This document shows, one piece after another, positions 4,310 through 63,085 of a DNA stretch of 64,000 nucleotides. The position numbers and the translations under genes were made by a program. Below the pieces are notes generated by a model that was not told where the DNA came from, searched no databases, and worked only from the letters and a program-made list of their open reading frames with translations. Origin of the DNA: Pavona decussata (Eukaryota); assembly GCA_977016875.1 (NCBI GenBank), contig CDRNST010000310.1:1240001-1304000 (forward strand), given 5' to 3'. How positions within the stretch are numbered: position 1 is the first letter of the stretch; each line of letters begins with the position of its first letter.

Positions 4310-4975
4310 CTAGATATCAGTCGATATACACGACTCATCACTTGCACAACATACCGAATAGTTTCTGAAGAAGTTATTGTCCCAGTAATCGCTTCCTTCA
4401 ACGCTGTAACGAATAGCAAACTCCATTTTGCTTCCCTCTTGCCAAATCGATGGCACGGCTATGCGGAAAAAAAACGTATCTGTCGCTCCATCCCTTGAAG
4501 TCGAAAGGTAGTTGGCTTGTTCGTCGCAAACGGTTTTCCAATCGTCTGTACTATAACGAATCGTAACGTCTTTCCTGTAGCTCACGTTTAATACTCGTAC
4601 AAACCCACGAACGATGGTCTTGTCGCAAACAACGCTCTCCAGACAAACGTACTGTCGCTGAACTCTATCGAGGAAATCGTCTTTATTTTCGGGTTGATCA
4701 AATAGGCATTTAAGGCATCGTCGCGCAGAATTCACTCGGTGCTTTTGTTGGGGGCGTTTAATCGACTCTTTGGGTTTGTTCCTTGGAGCAATTTCTATCA
4801 CAGTAACCAGTGAAAATCCCAGTAAATCAGCGAAGGTAACTCGTTTTTTGTTAGCTGTTATTTCCCATAAAGACGTCCTGGGAGCGATTTGTGCCACAGA
4901 AAACAGCGAAAATCTCGGTAAACCAGGAAACGTACTATAACCTCTTTTCTCGGTATTTTCCATAAAGACGTCCAT
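4310..4975 (-). CDS. PPP1R3: PP1 glycogen-targeting regulatory subunit (PPP1R3 family), divergent copy G1, ~221 aa
   Basis: KRVTFAD (RVxF) motif followed by CBM21 signatures CLE, GFVRVLNVSYRKDVTIRYSTDDW, MEFAIRY and YWDNN. The ORF-track start at 5026 is TTG; the first in-frame ATG is at 4975. Family-level call only. Confidence 0.9.
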   Translation of the reverse strand: MDVFMENTEKRGYSTFPGLPRFSLFSVAQIAPRTSLWEITANKKRVTFADLLGFSLVTVIEIAPRNKPKESIKRPQQKHRVNSARRCLKCLFDQPENKDDFLDRVQRQYVCLESVVCDKTIVRGFVRVLNVSYRKDVTIRYSTDDWKTVCDEQANYLSTSRDGATDTFFFRIAVPSIWQEGSKMEFAIRYSVEGSDYWDNNFFRNYSVCCASDESCISTDI

Positions 4976-5020
4976 AACAAGAGATGTCTTATGAAGAGAA
5001 TTAATTAAACTTGAGTATAA

Positions 5021-5094
5021 TTTCAAGCTGTTGTCTACGGGACGTGCAACAATTCACGACTGTTCACGTGATCCCACTGCACGTGTGCACGTGC
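5021..5094. promoter_or_regulatory. HRE/E-box cluster upstream of G1
   Basis: gACGTG-caacaatt-CACGA followed by CACGTG at 5065, 5080 and 5088; the block is conserved with 7988-8039. Confidence 0.65.
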
Positions 5095-5416
5095 GAAAAC
5101 ATTTCAGTATTTGCATAAAAGTATTAAAAGGAGAAGATCAAATCAGCGCAAAAATGCTGGTAGTCAGAAATAAATATCGAAGTGATTTTTCATCGTATTT
5201 TCCTTTATCTATTTATTTATTATTTATTTTTATCTTTTAATAGAGTTGATTTAACACCGAGCATGGACCAATAAGTGGCGTGACTGTTAACCTTACAGCT
5301 GTTTCGATATATCAGGAGATATATATCGGGGGAGGGAGGGAAATATAGTACTTATCTCATTAGAGAGGGGGGGGGGGGCTGGTCAGAATTTTGTCATTTT
5401 CTCTTCAGTTTGGATA

Positions 5417-5569
5417 CTGTGGAACTTCGTAAAGGGACTAGGGAAATTGGTTCATTACATCGAGGGTTCGTTATATCGAGGTTGGGATCCCTACATGTTA
5501 AGAGGCCGGGCTGGAGAATATCGATCGGGACTTCGTTAGTTTGAGGTTCGTTAAATCGACGTTCCATTG
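5417..5569. mobile_element. Degenerate Tigger/pogo-like MITE
   Basis: TA|ctgtggaacttcg ... cgacgttccattg|TA with an internal ttcgttatatcgagg motif. Confidence 0.55.
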
Positions 5570-6853
5570 TAGCATAGCTTTTTTCATTGGAGTGGTTTCT
5601 ACGTGAGAAAAGGGAAGAGAACGTGTTGCAGTTGTTGCTCTTTGTCGTTCCTTTGTGGTCAGTGATTTCTCAGTGATCATGGCTTCAGCTGGGTAGGCTG
5701 TCCCTGTCGAGTGAGCTTTTCCACCTAGTGTGATGAAATGGGAACTCCTTGGGTTGGCGAGTGCAACTAGTTCGTTTTGATCAGGTAGTAGTATAGCCTG
5801 ATTCTCAGACGGTCCAGGTCGTTCGTGGTGATTGTCACGCACTCTCTCAATCGCCGCGAACGACTTGGACCGTCTGAGAATCAGGCTAGCAGTAGTACAA
5901 CTGATGAAAGAAGCATCAATACTTCCTGATTCCCATATCAAGTTGAGTGAAGGCCTCTTTCCTTATCAGATTCGCTGGTTACTAATTCGCTCCTGTAGAT
6001 GTTTAAAAGGGACTTAGAATGCCGCGAGAAAACAGCTCAAATTGCTCCCATAAAACAACCCACCATCGCTACGCCTTCTGCACCCCCCTCCCCCTCCCCC
6101 AAAAACCCACCCACTCTCAACCCAGTTATTTGTAGACATGAACTTTGCACCGGTTGTTTACAACTTTATCTTCAAGAAAGAAGTCGGTAAAGAACACTCA
6201 GACGTGACACATTTTCTGGGTGTCACGACGGTCAGACTGTCTGCAAAGTAAACTTTTTTCACGGTTAGCGATGTATAAATCAATCACGAGAAAGAGTGTT
6301 TCATCAGTTATCCAAACACTGAGAAGTAGGTTGAAAAAAAAGAGGTGCAGTTAAGAAGAAATTCAAACTTTTTCTACTTAATAGCCAAACATAAATGATA
6401 TAAAAAAAATTAACGTATACTATATACTTATATATTTGCTGTAAACACTTTTTTCCTTACTGTTTTATTTTCCTCTCCTAAGCCTAATTTAACTAGCAGA
6501 GCTCTTCAACCAGTATTATAAATTCTACTTCCTCCTATTTTTTTTAACTGCACAGTGGTAGTGGCCAACACGAAAGCCTTGCTCCTTTGGCCACTACGCA
6601 CTTCTTCCGTAGAAGGTAAAATCACTAAATAAATTACTTTGCACGTTTAATTTTTTTCTTACTATAAAATATATTGTATTTCGTGAATTATGCGAATGTA
6701 AACTTCGTTAGTAATTCTATGTATTTTTTCTCGTTGGTGCTCAGTTTTACGTTCTCTCCCACCTTCCTAGTAAATTAAGAGTATCTGTCATTCTTAAGAT
6801 ATTTTCCAAACAAGGCTTTCTGAGACAATTGTAGAAGTCTGCGTTTGACATTT

Positions 6854-7805
6854 GAACGCCGTTTGCCATCCTCATGCCTCTTAAAATAAATCAAGAGTAT
6901 TTCATACACTTGATAATGACTTTTCAAGTCAAAACATTTTACCTTTAGTCGTAAGTTTCCATACGAGGCTTTATAGACGAATACACAAGTCTAGTTCAGA
7001 GTCTTTGGTACATTGAAACTATTACTATCAGCGCCATCGAAAATAAGGTACCCATGGCCGGCTGATGGGCCGGAATGTGCAATTGACCTGTTAAATTTTA
7101 CTTTGGAGACAATGTTTCTCTCACAGTTTGGTCTAAAACAGTCATGACTGGATCTCCAAACACTGTACATGGTAATTTTTTCCGTCGTTGTTATCCCAGA
7201 ACTCCTGGTTCAACACTCGATAGCAAATCGCAAACTGCATGTGCCGATTTACTTCAAAGTCGAGCGGAACTGTGATGCGGAAGGTGAACTTGTCGGTCTT
7301 CCCGTCCGAGCAAGACGACATGTAATCAGTCCAAATGTCCCGATAAGTCTCCCAGCCATCGAGTGTAAATCGTACAGTCACTTCTTTTCTGTAGGATAAA
7401 TTCGTCACTCGAATAAGTCCACTTACAACGAACTTTTCACATGCAATATTCTCAAGGCAGACATTTTGGCTGTACAAGCGCCGCATGAAACCGTCAATTC
7501 TCGAAGGCGCAACGAAGCAAGGTAGCAAACATTTCTTTGGTTCAACCCGCGGGATGTTTCCGTTGACATCGAAGCGGTTTTTCCGCGCACCAATGGCGCC
7601 ATATAATTCGCACAAGTTGTCTTCACTGTTGCATGGTGTTATAATTTTAACGAACTCGAGCTTGAGACCAACAAGGTCTGCAAAACAGACTTTTTTCGAG
7701 CGTAACGTGGGGCTGGTTGGCACAGTGCTCTTTTGTTGCGTGTCAGTCTTCATGGCCGCGGGTTTCTAGAATGAAGGTCAACAGTTCAAGCGCGCATCCG
7801 TGTTT
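6854..7805. repeat. Left copy of a ~950 bp direct repeat (G2 plus 3' flank); partner at 59711-60657
   Basis: Shared sequence begins gaacgccgtttgc(c/t)atcctcatg and continues through the CDS. Confidence 0.9.
7142..7753 (-). CDS. PPP1R3: PPP1R3-family glycogen-targeting subunit G2, 203 aa
   Basis: ATG in GCGGCCATG context; KKVCFAD, GLIRVTNLSYRKEVTVRFTLDGW, FAICY and FWDNN motifs. Confidence 0.92.
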   Translation of the reverse strand: MKTDTQQKSTVPTSPTLRSKKVCFADLVGLKLEFVKIITPCNSEDNLCELYGAIGARKNRFDVNGNIPRVEPKKCLLPCFVAPSRIDGFMRRLYSQNVCLENIACEKFVVSGLIRVTNLSYRKEVTVRFTLDGWETYRDIWTDYMSSCSDGKTDKFTFRITVPLDFEVNRHMQFAICYRVLNQEFWDNNDGKNYHVQCLEIQS

Positions 7806-7987
7806 GTTACTAGCATGCGCAGCGACGTCGATAACAGAAACCAATGAAACAACAATATCTTAGTTGGCACAAAAAATTCAATAACAGAGAAGCGTTGTTG
7901 ATGTCTTCTCAAGAGAATGGTGCGAAAAGCACGGAATACTAAAAAAAAAAAGCTTAACCTTTGGCTGTTCGCCGGTGTTTTCAAAAT

Positions 7988-8039
7988 TTGCAAGCTGCTT
8001 CCTGCGGGGCGTGCGACAGTTCACGGCTGTACACGTGAT
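7988..8039. promoter_or_regulatory. HRE/E-box block upstream of G2
   Basis: gGCGTG-cgacagtt-CACGG...CACGTG; 42/52 ungapped identity to 5021-5072 (hand count). Confidence 0.65.
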
Positions 8040-9559
8040 TGAACTTGCGTAAACATTTTAGCGATTTGTATAAACACGAGAGGTAAGAGGATGCAAATGT
8101 GCGGCTTTTGATAACAAAAATAGATAAAAGGACTTTTGATTCAAGATATTTAAAATTTCGTGGATAAACACTGAAGAGATTGTTATGGGGACTGAAACTT
8201 GTCTCACTCTTTTCCAGGTTCCCTCTCAGTCCCGGTGCACCCTTTCAATAAAAACAAGGTAGACGTGGACTTTGTACTAGCTGTTTTTAAAAGGCAAACT
8301 TCTTATTATTATTAAAATATTTTGAGTCAATCTTCTTGTTGGAGGTTATGAGGGAAAATTCAGACATCAGAGCCAAAAACCTCAGACCCTTTGTGAGGTG
8401 TCTCGAAAACTCTGACCCGAAAGACTCAGACCCCGGCTGACAAACAAATCCGCGTAACTTCAGCGTACACAAAAGGTCGCCACACTTAGAAAAAAATTCG
8501 TGACACAAGTCATGACCATCTTAAGATATATTAACATGTAGTTGTGTCAAATAATACAATTAGTGTTGCGCCGTAGTGGGCCCCTGAAGCCATTTTGGGT
8601 TTTAATACTTTTTGCGTCTTCCTTTTCACATCTACTCGTCCCCAGGGAAATTAAACGTAACTTCTTGGGAAGACGGTAGTTAGGCAGTTAGTTGGTTTCC
8701 ATTCGAGGCGATGTTGTAAAATACGCGCAATGAACTTTCCGTCACGAGACAGACACGTGCCTTTCATTTGCGCAGGCCGGAGGAAACAACGAACAGGAGA
8801 GGTTTGTGTGCACTTGAGCGGGCAATAACTTCCGAATTGTAGCCCGCACGGGCCACATTTGAATTAAGCCCTTGGGAAGCAACTAACGAGAGTGCACCTT
8901 ATGGTGAAAAGAAACTGCAGCAATGAAACTTTTACTTTTTATTTGCTGTTTTTGCCTCTTGATGAACATTATCACTATTAATTCCACCAAGAAATAACCC
9001 TGGGCGAGCGGTCCATTTTTGAAGTTCCATAAATTCTATAAAGTTTATTAAAACGTTTATCGGACCTACTGACGATTCATGTTTGTAATCGCTGTTGCTC
9101 CTCGAATTCCAAATTCAAATGTTTTCTTAATGGGTAGACAAAAGCTCGCTTTCGAAGTATTGATTGACTGCTTTTCTTCTCCGATGTTCGTTGTTTTTTT
9201 CGTCCGGTTGTTGACATTTTTCAGGGTCACCCCACGGGAAAATTAAAGCAAACACTTCAGACACTGTCCCCTGTGTTCCAAGATAAGTTGATGTCCTTTG
9301 AAAGGCACCTTTCTGCAAACTAATACAGATTGTCCTGTTTGGATGTTTTTGTGGTGAAGAAAGTTTCAGGAAACAGAATCTTATCTCCCGAATTTACAAG
9401 CTGTTGTTTCGTTTGGTTTGTTTTGACAAGAAGTCAAAACTTCGAAGCTAAATATAAATCCTTTATTTTTTCATTCAGTGCGTGGAAGTCTTGATGACTT
9501 TTTAGTTCACACAAGAGTTTTATTTATTGAATCACCACTGAGGTTAATATAAAATATGC

Positions 9560-23405: not shown

Positions 23406-23999
23406 TCACTGAGAAATTTCAAGGCACTGAACATGATAGTTTCTTTCAAAGTTATTGTCCCAAAACTCGTATCCAGCGACACGATAGCGAATTGCAAATT
23501 CAATTTGCAGATCAACTTCAAAATCCACTGGAACTGTAATTCGAAAGCTAAATTGCTCCGTTTTTCCATCCAGATTTGAGGACAAATAATCCGCCCAAAC
23601 ATCTCGGAAGTTGATCCAGCCGTCAAGCGTATATCTCACTGTCACCTCTTTAGCATAACCGATGTTTGTCACTCGTATAACCCCCGTAACAACCATATCG
23701 TCGCAAGAGATACTTTCGAGACAAACGTACTGTTTAGAGACGCGCTCCATGAAAGAATCTGTTTTACATGGCTCAGCGAAACTTGGCGACAGGTATTTCA
23801 TTCTCGGTCGTGAAGCATGCATGTGTAAGCCGCAGCTGTTGTTGTCCGTGGTTGTATCACAGACAGTCACGTCATCTTCTTTGCTGTATGGAGGTATGGT
23901 TTTCACGTTCTCAAGGGCGAAACCAAAGCTGTCTGCAAAAGTCTAAACCTTCTTCTTTATCGACCTCGTTGGAGTAGAGTTTCCGCTTGACCCATTCAT
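23406..23999 (-). pseudogene. PPP1R3: PPP1R3 array copy A2 with a premature stop inside the RVxF motif
   Basis: ATG at 23999. A 3-nt insertion converts GTT TCT TTT (VSF) to GTT TAG ACT TTT (V*TF), with the stop at 23943-23945. The rest of the frame, including CBM21, is open. Confidence 0.88.
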
Positions 24000-30494: not shown

Positions 30495-31085
30495 TTACTG
30501 AGAAGTTTCAAGGCACTGAACATGATAGTTTCTTTCAAAGTTATTGTCCCAAAACTCGTATCCAGCGACACGATAGCGAATTGCAAATTCAATTTGCATA
30601 TCAACTTCAAAATCCACCGGAGCTGTAATTCGAAAGCTAAATTGTTCCGTTTTTCCATCCAGATTTGAGGACAAATAATCCGCCCAAACATCTCGGAAGT
30701 TGATCCAGCCGTCAAGTGTGTATCTCACTGTAATCTCTTTAGCATAACCTATGTTTGTCACTCGTACAACCCCCGTAACAACCATATCGTCGCAAGAGAT
30801 ACTTTCGAGACAAACGTTCTATTTAAAGACGCGCTCCATGAAAGAATCTGTTTTACATGGCTCAGCGAAACTTGGCGACAGGTATTTTATTCTCTGTCGT
30901 GAAGTGTGCATGTGTAAGCCGCAGCTGTTGTTGTCCGTGGCTGTATGGCAGACAGTCACGTCATCTTCTTTGCTGTATGGAGGTATGGTTTTCACGTTCT
31001 CGAGCGTAAAACCAGCGCTGTCTGCAAAAGAAACCTTCTTCTTTACCGGCCTCGTTGGAGTAGAGTTTCCGCCCGGCCCATTCAT
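30495..31085 (-). pseudogene. PPP1R3: PPP1R3 array copy A3 with a nonsense codon at the start of CBM21
   Basis: CAG (Q in sister copies) is TAG at 30819-30821; ORFs 30819..31085 and 30495..30785 are in the same frame. Confidence 0.88.
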
Positions 31086-59710: not shown

Positions 59711-60657
59711 GAACGCCGTTTGCTATCCTCATGTCTCTTAATATAAATCAAGAGTATTTCATACGCTTGATTATGACTTTTCAAGTCAAAACATTTTACT
59801 TTTAGTCGTAAGTTTCCATACGAGGCTTTATAGACGAATACACAAGTTTAGTTCAGAGTCTTTGGTACATTGAAACTATTACTATCAGCCTCATCGAAAA
59901 TGAGGTACCCCTGGCCGGCGGATGGGCCGAAATGCACAATTGACTTGTTAAATTTTACTTTGGAGACAATGTTTCTCTCACAGTTTGGTCTAAAACCGGT
60001 CATGACTGGATCTCCAAACACTGTACATGGTAATTTTTTCCGTCGTTGTTATCCCAGAACTCTTGGTTCAACACTCGATAGCAAATCGCAAACTGCATGT
60101 GCCGATTTACTTCAAAGTCAAACGGAACTGTGATGCGGAAGGTGAACTTGTCGGTCTTCCCGTCCGAGCAAGAAGACATGTAATCAGTCCAAATATCCCG
60201 ATAATTCTTCCAGCCATCGAGTGTGAATCGCACAGTCACTTCTTTTCTGTAGGATAAATTCGTCACTCGAATAAGTCCACTTACAACGAACTTTTCACAT
60301 GCAATGTTCTCAAGGCAGACATTTTGGCTGTACAAGCGCCGCATGAAACCGTCAATTCTCGAAGGCGCAACGAAGCAAGGTAGCAAACATTTCTTTGGTT
60401 CAACCCGCGGGATGTTTCCGTTGATATCGCAATGGTCTTTCCGAGCATCAGCGACGTTACGTAAGTCGCACAGGTTGTCTTCACTGCTGCACGGTGTTAT
60501 AGTTTTAACGAACTCGAGCTTGAGACCAACAAGGTCTGCAAAACAGACTTTTTTCGGGCTGGTTGGCGCAGTACTCTTTTGTTGCGTGTCAGTCTTCATG
60601 GCCGCACTGAGGTTTCAGTCTTAAATAATGTCTAACCGTTCAAGCGTGGATCCGTGT
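59711..60657. repeat. Right copy of the ~950 bp direct repeat (G9 plus 3' flank)
   Basis: Colinear with 6854-7805. Confidence 0.9.
60000..60599 (-). CDS. PPP1R3: PPP1R3-family subunit G9, 199 aa, close paralog of 7142..7753
   Basis: KKVCFAD plus CBM21; the C-terminal ~140 aa differ from G2 at only a few positions. Confidence 0.92.
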   Translation of the reverse strand: MKTDTQQKSTAPTSPKKVCFADLVGLKLEFVKTITPCSSEDNLCDLRNVADARKDHCDINGNIPRVEPKKCLLPCFVAPSRIDGFMRRLYSQNVCLENIACEKFVVSGLIRVTNLSYRKEVTVRFTLDGWKNYRDIWTDYMSSCSDGKTDKFTFRITVPFDFEVNRHMQFAICYRVLNQEFWDNNDGKNYHVQCLEIQS

Positions 60658-63085
60658 TCCACTTTTTGGCCAGTGATATTTATTGCTGCAGCTGAAATCC
60701 GGTCTGATCGTGTGGTCGGCTGTCAGAAATCGTGGCCTATTTCGGAGTCGTTCGGGTGGATTCGAGCTGCAACGAAAACATTTCAACTGTCATCGGGATG
60801 ACTGGCACATGCAGTGTCAGTTTTTAGCGCGCGATAACGGCTAACAAATTTTTCAATCGAGATTTGAAAAAAAAACGTTAGTTCTCTATAAGGCATATAG
60901 CAGTTGTACTTACAAATATCACAGGGTCTTTTCCTCCGTGGTCCTTAGTGCGAGCAATGTACACAGCCTCAGTTTCAGTCCCCAGTTAGTCGCAAATACG
61001 TACGTATTTTGCTACAGCGCGCTCAGTTCTTTGCGCGTGCTGAGATATATCTGGGTTACAAAGAGTCTGTGACGAACCCAGTTATATAGTCGTTTTGACA
61101 AGAGGTCAAGCGAAATGTCACGAACGATCGTGGCTCAACACATGAATGTGTAAACAACCTATCGCTACCAAAATAAAGCTTGAAATAGTCAGGGCAACCT
61201 GCTTAAAATCAAGGTCTGCTTTATAAAAGTAGGAACTTGGTATTTTTTCTTTAGAGAAATGTCTCAAAGATCCAGCGTAAGTGTGTGTAATGATCGTGGA
61301 TTAATGACGAACAAAGACAAAAATAATCTCTCGTATGCAAATCGTATCCAAACGGACACATCCTCGCCAAATAATGCATGCAATGTCCAATTTATGACGT
61401 CACACGTCTAAAAGTTAAAAAATCGTGCGAGAAAGCATATCCCATCATCGTGCATCTAAAAATGTCTGATTGTTGTTCAATTCTTTCTCGCTTTAATCTT
61501 TTAACCAGCGAGAGAAAAACATAAACAAAGAAAGAAAACCGCGCTTACTCCTTTTTTTTTAACAGTTCGCCCTCATTTACAATATGCATTCTCTGAGCTC
61601 GCAAAATTGCCCTCGCTGACGTAATGTAAACAGTTCATTGGATCTATTTAAAAGGTTGGGGTGAGTTTGATGACATCCTGATTAAAACTTATTCGCCTGC
61701 GGATGCTCGTTTTGTCGCAACATTTCTTTCATTGCCGTTGTTTTGTTCAAAATATTGATAAACGAATTTGGTTTTTAAGGCCACTTCTTAAATTTAATAA
61801 TTTTGATAAATTAAAAAGTTTCTGTTTCATGAAAATGCATGCTCATCCGCACGTTCTAATTTTATCAAGAGGCTTCTGTTGACCCTATTTGAGCTCAACA
61901 ATATCCAGCATGAATGCTGTTGTTCCGCCGTGCGGCCCAAAAGGTCAGTTCAACGCTGCACCACTCCCGTTAAAAGGAATTCACAGTATCTTATAAACTT
62001 TAAAATTTTAGCTTTGCTGAACAAGTTTACTAGAATTCCCTTTCGAATTATTTTTAAATGTATCCCGTTTCGGTTTTGCTTTCTTTTCTTATAAACACAC
62101 GCGTGGTATTACAAACTATAAAAGGGGGACCGATGGACACCACTTTTCGGTTTTTTTTTTTTTTTTTGTCAGTATAGGTTGAACACTTTGAAGATCAATG
62201 ATTTTGTTTGGCGGAACTGAACAACAAAACGCCTTGAGCACTAGGGTTTCTTTGTTTACAGAAAAACACGTTTATTTTCGTTAAACCGATAGGAATCGAA
62301 AACATTTTAATGGAGAAAAGAGATGCAATTGAAAGCGTGAATTTATAAATTTCATTTCTGGGGAGTTGTCTTGACTGTTCTTACCAAACTGATGATATTT
62401 TTGAACGGTTTTCGAGCAAGAACCTTCAGTGCTAATCATTTACAGGAACAGTACATGAGGCTATATATAGACAGCACCGGCATTCTACTGTCTGTAACTC
62501 TCATTGTCTGATATGACAGCATGAAATATTTTCCCGCGACTGCACGTCAGTGTTGATATAACAACAGAAATGTTGAATAATGCCGAATTATTGAACTTTC
62601 ATTTATTGTTAGCCCTAGGCTGGCTTGGTATATTGTTTAGGTTACAATCTGTCATTGCAGTTCAGGCTGAGCGGCATCGGTCGGTGTTTTCAAAAGGCGT
62701 CAACGTAAAGTAATTTAAAAATTACTCATGAGCAATAAAATACTCAAATGTGTCAAATGTAAACTCATCAGTAGATTATAATGTTTAATTGAAAAAAAGT
62801 ACAGCATAGGCAGATTCTGTTTGCATTATTGTATATCTGCTAGTCGACTTTTGTTTGGAAGAAGAAAATGAACAAACGCGTCAACTTCCTCGACCAAGTG
62901 CCGAGCGACGCATTAAATCAGTTCGAAGCGAGAAAGATATTTTTGTTTTGGAGGTATTGTTCTGTTTCTGCCACGGTAATGAAAGTTTTACGGTGCTTCT
63001 CGTGACCAGGTTATTTCAATTTTCCGCAAATATCTGAGCTCGTCAATTAAGGGTGAAGGGTAAGGGTATTAAATAAGGGATCTCT

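Follow-up and report, generated by a model that had tools for sequence, protein, structure and literature searches.

A Putative E-Box Promoter Module of a Coral Glycogen-Targeting Gene, Conserved Across Corals and Apparently Captured by a Chimeric Paralogue

Introduction

Why should two neighboring genes with very dissimilar proteins carry much the same short block of DNA before their start codons? This question is raised by a 64,000-nt stretch of the coral Pavona decussata (contig CDRNST010000310.1, positions 1,240,001 to 1,304,000; hereafter, the window), in which the genes G1 (4310-4975, minus strand) and G2 (7142-7753, minus strand) are single open reading frames (ORFs) for CBM21 proteins of the PPP1R3-like type; i.e., subunits that target protein phosphatase 1 (PP1) to glycogen. 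The two proteins are ~39% identical, and an initial annotation of the locus had explained the block as an ancient element for hypoxia-inducible factor (HIF), or for another basic helix-loop-helix (bHLH) factor, preserved in both paralogues since their divergence. The analysis described here supports the element and assigns it a different history. With moderate confidence, the block is considered to be a regulated, start-proximal promoter module of the G1-type gene that is read by bHLH factors. The module is deeply conserved in the G1 genes of corals, and G2 appears to have captured it.

Reef corals experience daily swings between hyperoxia and night-time hypoxia, and are supplied with sugar by their symbionts. 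Through the module, glycogen storage is probably coupled to a bHLH factor that senses oxygen, the clock or nutrients. A literature search found no study of coral PPP1R3 genes or their promoters.

A Block Shared by Two Upstream Regions

The block is a gapless match of 42 out of 52 positions between 5021-5072, upstream of G1, and 7988-8039, upstream of G2. When gaps are allowed, a local alignment of the two 600-nt upstream regions covers approximately 5019-5144 versus 7984-8074 with one 13-nt gap, and its score of 62 lies far above that of 300 shuffles (21.4 +/- 2.3, maximum 31), such that the similarity first reported stands on recomputation. Read on the plus strand, G1 contains GACGTG (5041-5046), a spacer of eight nucleotides (N8), CACG (5055-5058), N6 and CACGTG (5065-5070), with extra copies of CACGTG at 5080 and 5088. 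The corresponding elements of G2 are GGCGTG (8008-8013), N8, CACG (8022-8025), N6 and CACGTG (8032-8037). All of the CGTG and CACG cores are therefore kept where the initial annotation had placed them, as are the two additional E-boxes of G1, and none of the ten mismatches falls within the 14 core positions, for which the chance probability is 0.03.

In gene orientation, the G1 promoter module (5019-5144, minus strand) contains, in order, TTTATGCAAAT (5120-5109), AAATGTTT, CACGTG (5093-5088), CACGTG (5085-5080), TCACGTGA (5071-5064), the inverted pair CGTG-N8-CACG (5058-5043) and ACAGCTTGAAATT. The copy at G2 (7984-8074, minus strand) similarly contains TTTATACAAAT (8074-8064), AAATGTTT, a degenerate E-box, CAAGTT (8047-8042), N4, CACGTG (8037-8032), CGTG-N8-CACG (8025-8010) and GCAGCTTGCAAATT.

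The possibility that the block is a common repeat, or derives from a transposon, was ruled out, since the genome holds two copies only. Specifically, a degenerate form of the 32-nt core with three mismatches or fewer finds no site in the 602-Mb genome beyond these two, and the composite CACGTG-N6-YGTG-N7-GCACG finds no third site there in addition to the copies at G1 and G2. Likewise, the region that contains the G2 block (7805-9360) has no other genomic match.

Conservation of the Module in Coral G1 Genes

A whole-genome protein search identified 12 CBM21 genes, 11 of which reside in one cluster, and a single gene of the G1 type. The set of G1 orthologues comprises 18 loci (the window, L004, L011, L012, L014, L015 and L017-L028), with protein identities down to 57%. 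Five of these are derived from assemblies, namely L004 (97% protein identity), L012 (90%), L011 (87%), L014 (68%) and L015 of Oculina patagonica (64%), and the 12 loci L017-L028 are contigs from coral metagenomes of the Joint Genome Institute (JGI), at 57-66% protein identity. In Oculina, the G1 orthologue shares a cluster with the G2-like genes and occupies its downstream end, and the synteny is therefore old.

When 1 kb of sequence upstream of G1 is compared to distant orthologues by blastn with a word size of 7, the module alone still aligns, from -168 to -43. The most consistently aligning part, from -96 to -65 (versus L021, L022, L024, L025 and L017), corresponds to the deepest-conserved core at 5040-5071 (minus strand), TCACGTGAACAGT-YGTG-N7-GCACGT, which is delimited by these blastn matches together with the invariant columns of a sequence alignment, A3. 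Those columns are the TCAC of the E-box, the GTG of the first half-site and the GCACG of the second. In the same alignment, the upstream E-box, GCACGTGC, is nearly invariant, and TTTATG(C/T)AAAT is kept farther upstream. The canonical palindromic CACGTG found at 5065, 5080, 5088 and 8032 is also conserved in orthologues.

In gene orientation, the first half-site is CGTG in the window's group, L015 and L017, and TGTG in L014 and L021-L025. Of 13 further G1-clade upstream regions examined, 10 contain the pair YGTG-N7-GCACG, and the spacing of its half-sites is constant in all 12 aligned module copies. Among close relatives, the window and L012 agree at 61/63 positions of the module versus 87% in its surroundings, and the G1 modules of the window and L004 differ at three bases only, all of them in the N8 spacer. 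In all G1 orthologues except that of Oculina, the module lies upstream of the ATG at a distance of 79-144 nt, counted from the point where the protein match begins if no ATG could be fixed. In Oculina (L015:7580-7930), the module is tandemly duplicated at a distance of ~213 nt, with the distal copy retaining the bipartite site and the proximal copy retaining two CACGTG E-boxes.

Conservation of the cores across species, on whose absence the initial annotation would have let its proposal fall, is thus present among the coral G1 orthologues, and the G1 block is a true phylogenetic footprint under constraint.

Chimeric Origin of G2

The proposal that the footprint dates from an ancient split of G1 and G2 did not survive closer analysis, as the coding body of G2 is a young copy, its relatives lack the element, and a relic of a G1-type gene is preserved in its leader. 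The first of these points is seen in a 961-bp blastn alignment, which pairs 6854-7804 with 59711-60658 at 92% identity; its ends are sharp, and nothing else is in common. The latter interval belongs to W9 (gene at 60000-60599, minus strand), another CBM21 gene of the window, and the W9-derived segment of G2 (6854-7804, minus strand) encompasses 51 nt of leader, the coding sequence (CDS) and ~290 nt of 3' flank. Consistent with this, the G2 and W9 proteins are 90% identical, and G2 is the sister of W9 in the CDS/protein tree, inside the window's own species group. The coral sequences form three clades in the protein tree; namely, G1, W3-W8, and G2/W9.

Upstream of this body, 7837-7918 (minus strand) is collinear with the start region of G1, with a local score of 41 versus 20.8 +/- 3.5 for shuffles, none of which reached 41 in 1000 trials. 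This stretch reads as a decayed G1-type 5' end, including the leader, a start codon changed from ATG to ATT and the first ~18 codons, and now forms part of the 5' leader of G2. By hand count, the formerly coding leader is ~81% identical to G1 at aligned positions. Because a W9-like segment with sharp ends is found together with a dead G1-type start region in the leader, G2 is a chimera in which a G1-type 5' end has been joined to a W9-type body, with a sharp junction at 7804.

The upstream regions of W9-type genes lead to the same conclusion. Neither CACGTG nor the bipartite site was found at the corresponding place in L005, L006, L007, L008, L009, L010 and L013 (seven loci from six samples) or in W9 itself. 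The module is therefore present through the G1 clade and absent from those upstream regions of the G2/W9 clade that were examined outside G2. In addition, the W9 upstream region is common to L005, L006, L013, L008 and L007, including a GTAAGT and the acceptor-like TTTTCGTTGCAG, and is evidently the ancestral one for the G2/W9 clade. In these genes (~60760-60910 in W9; L005, L006, L007, L008 and L013), GTAAGT occurs ~311 nt and TTTTCGTTGCAG ~170 nt before the ATG, which suggests a short intron in the 5' untranslated region (UTR). The module and the W9-type upstream regions have 13 nt in common, TGAAATGTTTTCG; this match was set aside, as in the W9-type genes it falls at this apparent 5'-UTR intron acceptor, ~140 nt after GTAAGT; homology of the matching stretches is possible.

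The two parts of G2 seem to differ in age. The divergence is ~20% between the G1-like part and G1, as compared to ~8% between the W9-like part and W9, and it is on account of this difference that a two-step origin is proposed. Judging from these levels of divergence, the G1-type duplicate likely came first and its body was replaced later. In this scenario, a G1-type 5' end, including promoter, leader and start codon, would have been duplicated, and a W9-type coding body would subsequently have been attached to it or introduced by conversion, thereby placing a W9-type protein under G1-type control. The coexistence of dissimilar proteins and a similar promoter block would then be explained by mosaic ancestry, and not by selection acting across an ancient paralogue split. 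Chimeric genes that captured a promoter or 5' end after tandem duplication or gene conversion are a known phenomenon, and in G2, likewise, one type of paralogue has contributed the promoter, the leader and the dead start codon, and another the body. Unlike promoter-capture chimeras in general, both parents of G2 come from the same tandem family.

A block inherited in this manner might also persist in G2 as a neutral remnant of the G1-type 5' end that was duplicated, with other sequences driving the gene. The identity of the block (78-82%) is indeed close to that of the decayed leader, and G2 has lost the first E-box to CAAGTT and has no third one. On the other hand, the 52-nt block is free of indels amid flanks that are full of them, and all three of its cores are retained (P = 0.03). 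Furthermore, the G2 upstream regions of the window and L004 have zero differences over the 215 nt from -413 to -198, whereas most 100-nt bins of the flanks have 1-7 differences per 100 nt, and a contig that is guessed to be RNA has G2 transcripts reaching to at least -167, towards the module. For G2, a merely neutral block is therefore held to be rather unlikely.

Position Relative to Transcription

Three sequencing runs (X1-X3) were available as assembled contigs only, and are guessed to represent RNA. Their contigs cover genes and not intergenic DNA, with both G1 and G2 present in X1 and X2, and G1 together with the 3' flank of G2 present in X3. At G1, an X1 contig spanning 4289-5029 stops inside the block. 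At G2, an X1 contig (7679-7920) is collinear with the genome through the G1-derived leader and past the boundary of the W9-like segment, and G2-specific contigs with few mismatches were obtained.

Transcription of G1 may start near 5029, which would place the 52-nt block at approximately -43 to +9. An alternative start is suggested at the E-box cluster, ~20-45 nt downstream of the TATA-like TTTATGCAAAT. Two short JGI contigs (L017 and L023) begin exactly at the E-boxes, and a contig from a sister dataset (L020) reaches farther upstream. Under either reading, the module is start-proximal.

Two contigs that seemed to extend the G1 transcript were rejected. The Logan contig L012 was considered as a transcript that includes the module; since it follows the genome collinearly over 5228-3190, beyond the limits of the RNA-like contigs, it is probably genomic and carries no information on the start site. 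The second, an X3 Logan contig (4826-4972; L016), has a loose end at 4972 that might have been an upstream exon or an allele. The attached sequence comes from genome contig C65, where it forms the 5' leader of a beta-tubulin gene, and the joint between the G1 5' end and this leader is an assembly chimera, not a splice.

Candidate Readers of the Module

In gene orientation, the module is composed of the TATA/octamer-like TTTATGCAAAT, two or three palindromic CACGTG E-boxes and the inverted pair YGTG-N7-GCACG, which is RCGTGC-N7-CAC(G/A) when read from the opposite strand. It is envisioned that dimeric factors of the bHLH type bind these sites and set G1 transcription in response to a physiological signal. 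Potential binders include bHLH leucine zipper (bHLH-ZIP) or bHLH-PAS factors that would recognize CACGTG, and possibly HIF/ARNT at ACGTGC, and the signal could be oxygen, the day/night cycle, or sugar. The sequence tests do not separate HIF from E-box factors of the CLOCK, USF, MITF, SREBP and Mlx types, and the case for each is considered below.

The HIF reading was favored by the initial annotation, in the form of an RCGTG core plus an inverted ancillary half-site 8 nt away, kept since the ancient divergence of the paralogues. The published hypoxia-response element (HRE) is RCGTG, with a HIF ancillary sequence (HAS) of consensus CA(G/C)(A/G)(T/G/C) located 7-15 nt downstream (PMC6660265). 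On the plus strand, both window copies resemble this layout, with GACGTG-N8-CACGA in G1 and GGCGTG-N8-CACGG in G2, and thus each contains the RCGTG core. RCGTG is retained in 10 of 11 module copies, N8 spacing occurs in all of them, and the C/T change that converts the second half-site from CACG to CACA remains inside the HAS consensus. The arrangement RCGTG-N8-CAC(G/A) fits the published pattern in most orthologues, with a mixed outcome for the full ancillary consensus. The ancillary site matches in G2 (CACGG), L014 (CACAT), L015 (CACGT) and L017 (CACGG), and misses the fifth position in G1 (CACGA), L011 (CACGA) and L025 (CACAA); moreover, L011 has TCGTG in place of RCGTG.

Related proteins lend an oxygen link circumstantial support. 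Human PPP1R3C is a HIF-1 target whose expression depends on HIF-1, according to Shen 2010 as cited in PMC7491117, in line with the inducibility claimed for the mammalian gene at the outset. A PPP1R3B homologue is up-regulated in hypoxic Nematostella females (PMC12010470). Human PPP1R3C (PTG) is of the same CBM21 PP1 glycogen-targeting family as the coral genes, an RCGTG-type site is near the gene start in both, and storing glycogen at low oxygen would be a plausible logic for either. However, HIF binding and hypoxic induction of PPP1R3C have been shown in human cells, and for the coral genes they would be predictions. The coral element is dominated by CACGTG, unlike that of the human gene, and the regulatory DNA of mammals and that of corals cannot be demonstrated to be homologous. 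With the bipartite HRE and HAS of the EPO/VEGF type (PMC6660265), the coral copies share RCGTG followed by an inverted CAC(G/A) at 8 nt. In contrast to these, the coral element resides at a promoter or start site and not in an enhancer, and G1 (CACGA) and L011 (TCGTG) depart from the consensus.

Several additional observations argue against HIF. An element kept since the ancient split is contradicted by the recent W9-type body of G2 and by the lack of the element elsewhere in the G2/W9 clade. The best conserved sites of the module are CACGTG E-boxes, which are not bound by HIF according to a survey of HREs (PMC6660265). The genome contains no further copy of the composite, hence there is no visible signal of a regulon. 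Finally, the inverted pair is equally compatible with a 14-bp palindrome, GTGCA-N4-TGCAC, that would serve some other dimer. On balance, the ancient HIF footprint is unlikely, and HIF is a doubtful candidate for the reader even if the module is indeed read by bHLH factors. Similarly, it would be somewhat surprising if ACGTGC-N7-CAC(G/A) had served as a genuine HIF/ARNT element at the G1-type promoter since before the scleractinian radiation.

Diel or nutrient control by E-box factors only, without HIF, is another possibility, to which some credence is given. Under this alternative, the readers would be bHLH-ZIP or clock proteins such as CLOCK/CYCLE, USF, MITF/TFE, SREBP, Myc/Max or Mondo/Mlx. 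G1 has two or three perfect CACGTG within 30 nt, and GCACGTGC and TCACGTG(A) are the best conserved columns. One of the G1 E-boxes is T-flanked (TCACGTGA), the form preferred by the USF, TFE/MITF, SREBP and CLOCK classes. Several perfect CACGTG near a metabolic gene are likewise typical of clock and nutrient promoters, such as those controlled by CLOCK/BMAL1 or by ChREBP/Mondo-Mlx through the carbohydrate-response element (ChoRE). In a ChoRE, two E-boxes are separated by exactly 5 nt, and tandem clock E-boxes follow a rule of 6-7 nt. The coral spacings differ from both: they are 2 and 9 nt in G1 of the window, 4 nt in L011, L012, L014 and G2 (where the first box is degenerate), 11 nt in L012, and 16-17 nt in L015 and L021-L025. 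No 5-nt spacing, and thus no ChoRE, was found among G1, G2, L011, L012, L014, L015 and L021-L025. In addition, E-box factors by themselves leave unexplained the invariant GCACG at a fixed distance from YGTG.

Very unlikely is a third alternative, in which the block acts at the RNA level, as a hairpin or translational element of the 5' leader, or is a mere basal core-promoter element of the initiator or downstream kind. GTGCA-N4-TGCAC is palindromic, and the stretch may be transcribed, given the two short JGI contigs that start at the E-boxes. Yet the z-scores for folding (-0.16 and -0.30) are no better than those of shuffles, the arm changes among orthologues in A3 are one-sided and never compensatory, and the block has no match in Rfam. 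A structured RNA element or a member of a known RNA family was rejected for these reasons.

The reading of the block as a bHLH-bound promoter module has weaknesses of its own, and the following points weigh against it. The start near 5029 competes with that at the E-box cluster, and the latter would place the bipartite site in the leader; in any case, the RNA nature of X1-X3 is only guessed. The bipartite part is missing in a subgroup of G1 orthologues (L018-L020), with L018 also lacking the E-box. Genome-wide, CGTG-Nx-CACG has no excess specific to N8, with counts of 2939 for N7, 4141 for N8 and 5032 for N9, where the reversed control was not CpG-matched. Lastly, the G1-G2 identity of ~78-82% is about that of common descent at the inferred age, and the module copy at G2, its first E-box already degenerate, could in part be a neutral relic.

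Other Features of the Gene Cluster

The window DNA is that of a scleractinian coral, with the nearest named homologues in Montipora, Oculina, Orbicella and Desmophyllum. It contains nine single-ORF CBM21 genes of the PPP1R3-like, PP1 glycogen-targeting kind, all on the minus strand; besides G1, G2 and W9, these include W3-W8, positioned between 16950 and 55187. G1 matches the Pfam family CBM_21 with an E-value of 2e-29 and has the PP1-docking motif KRVTF, and G2, with its W9-type coding body, also matches CBM_21 and has KKVCF; both docking motifs are of the RVxF type. G1 has a longer N-terminus owing to a tandem duplication of ~95-96 nt at its 5' end (4859-4878 and 4954-4973). The protein is thus 221 aa in length, whereas most G1 orthologues have ~177-181 aa; L004 and L011 share the long form, and L012 has 211 aa. 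In the whole-genome protein search, W4 (23421-23960) and W5 (30507-31046) were each found to have one in-frame TAG. Their longest ATG-started ORFs are 138 aa and 96 aa, respectively, and the two are probably pseudogenes.

W3-W8 have upstream elements of a different type. A perfect cAMP-response element of 8 nt, TGACGTCA, occurs 113-122 nt before the ATG of each of these genes (17652, 24120, 31206, 38479, 45720 and 55301), and at a similar place (-90 to -198) in other coral genera (L005, L007, L009, L010 and L013). Its seven occurrences in the window compare with 0.85 expected, and the CBM21 family thus seems to have another conserved promoter element, independent of the first. Two families of CGTG-N8-CACG are also associated with W3-W8, namely CGTGTATGCCCGCACG, ~1010 nt upstream (18547, 25020, 25528, 46605 and 56217), and CGTGTCAACCCGCACG, ~575 nt upstream and ~20 nt after a TATAAA (38933, 46168 and 55751). 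Both are kept among close relatives only. The total of 11 CGTG-N8-CACG in the window versus 0.26 expected was discarded as independent evidence, since most are copies in the duplicated W3-W8 units. A similar skeleton ~760 nt upstream of W3-W8, TGCAAT-TATAAA followed at a distance by ATCACATGAC, was also rejected, as its alignment score does not rise above noise and distant orthologues have not kept it.

Finally, an inverted repeat at 5794-5888 has 41-nt arms that are 93% complementary and a 13-nt loop, and many high-depth contigs map nearby. On both strands, it gives a weak, sub-threshold match to the Rfam family mir-5892. It is most likely a dispersed repeat resembling a miniature inverted-repeat transposable element.

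Biological Significance

Conserved promoter modules of the E-box/HRE-like kind and chimeric genes are both already known. What the coral locus provides is a short, sharply bounded (32-nt), deeply conserved cis-element before a glycogen-targeting gene, together with a built-in control, as G2 and W9 have near-identical proteins and the element is found in G2 only. Owing to this contrast, it can be tested directly whether oxygen, the clock or sugar controls glycogen targeting in corals. If the element does prove to be one for HIF, the HIF-to-glycogen-targeting link of human PPP1R3C would exist in corals as well, by common descent or by convergence. G2, a family member of different build, would then have come under this oxygen input through promoter capture, and G2 versus W9 would constitute a natural swap experiment. 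The locus also offers a clean case of regulatory rewiring via promoter capture within a tandem gene family.

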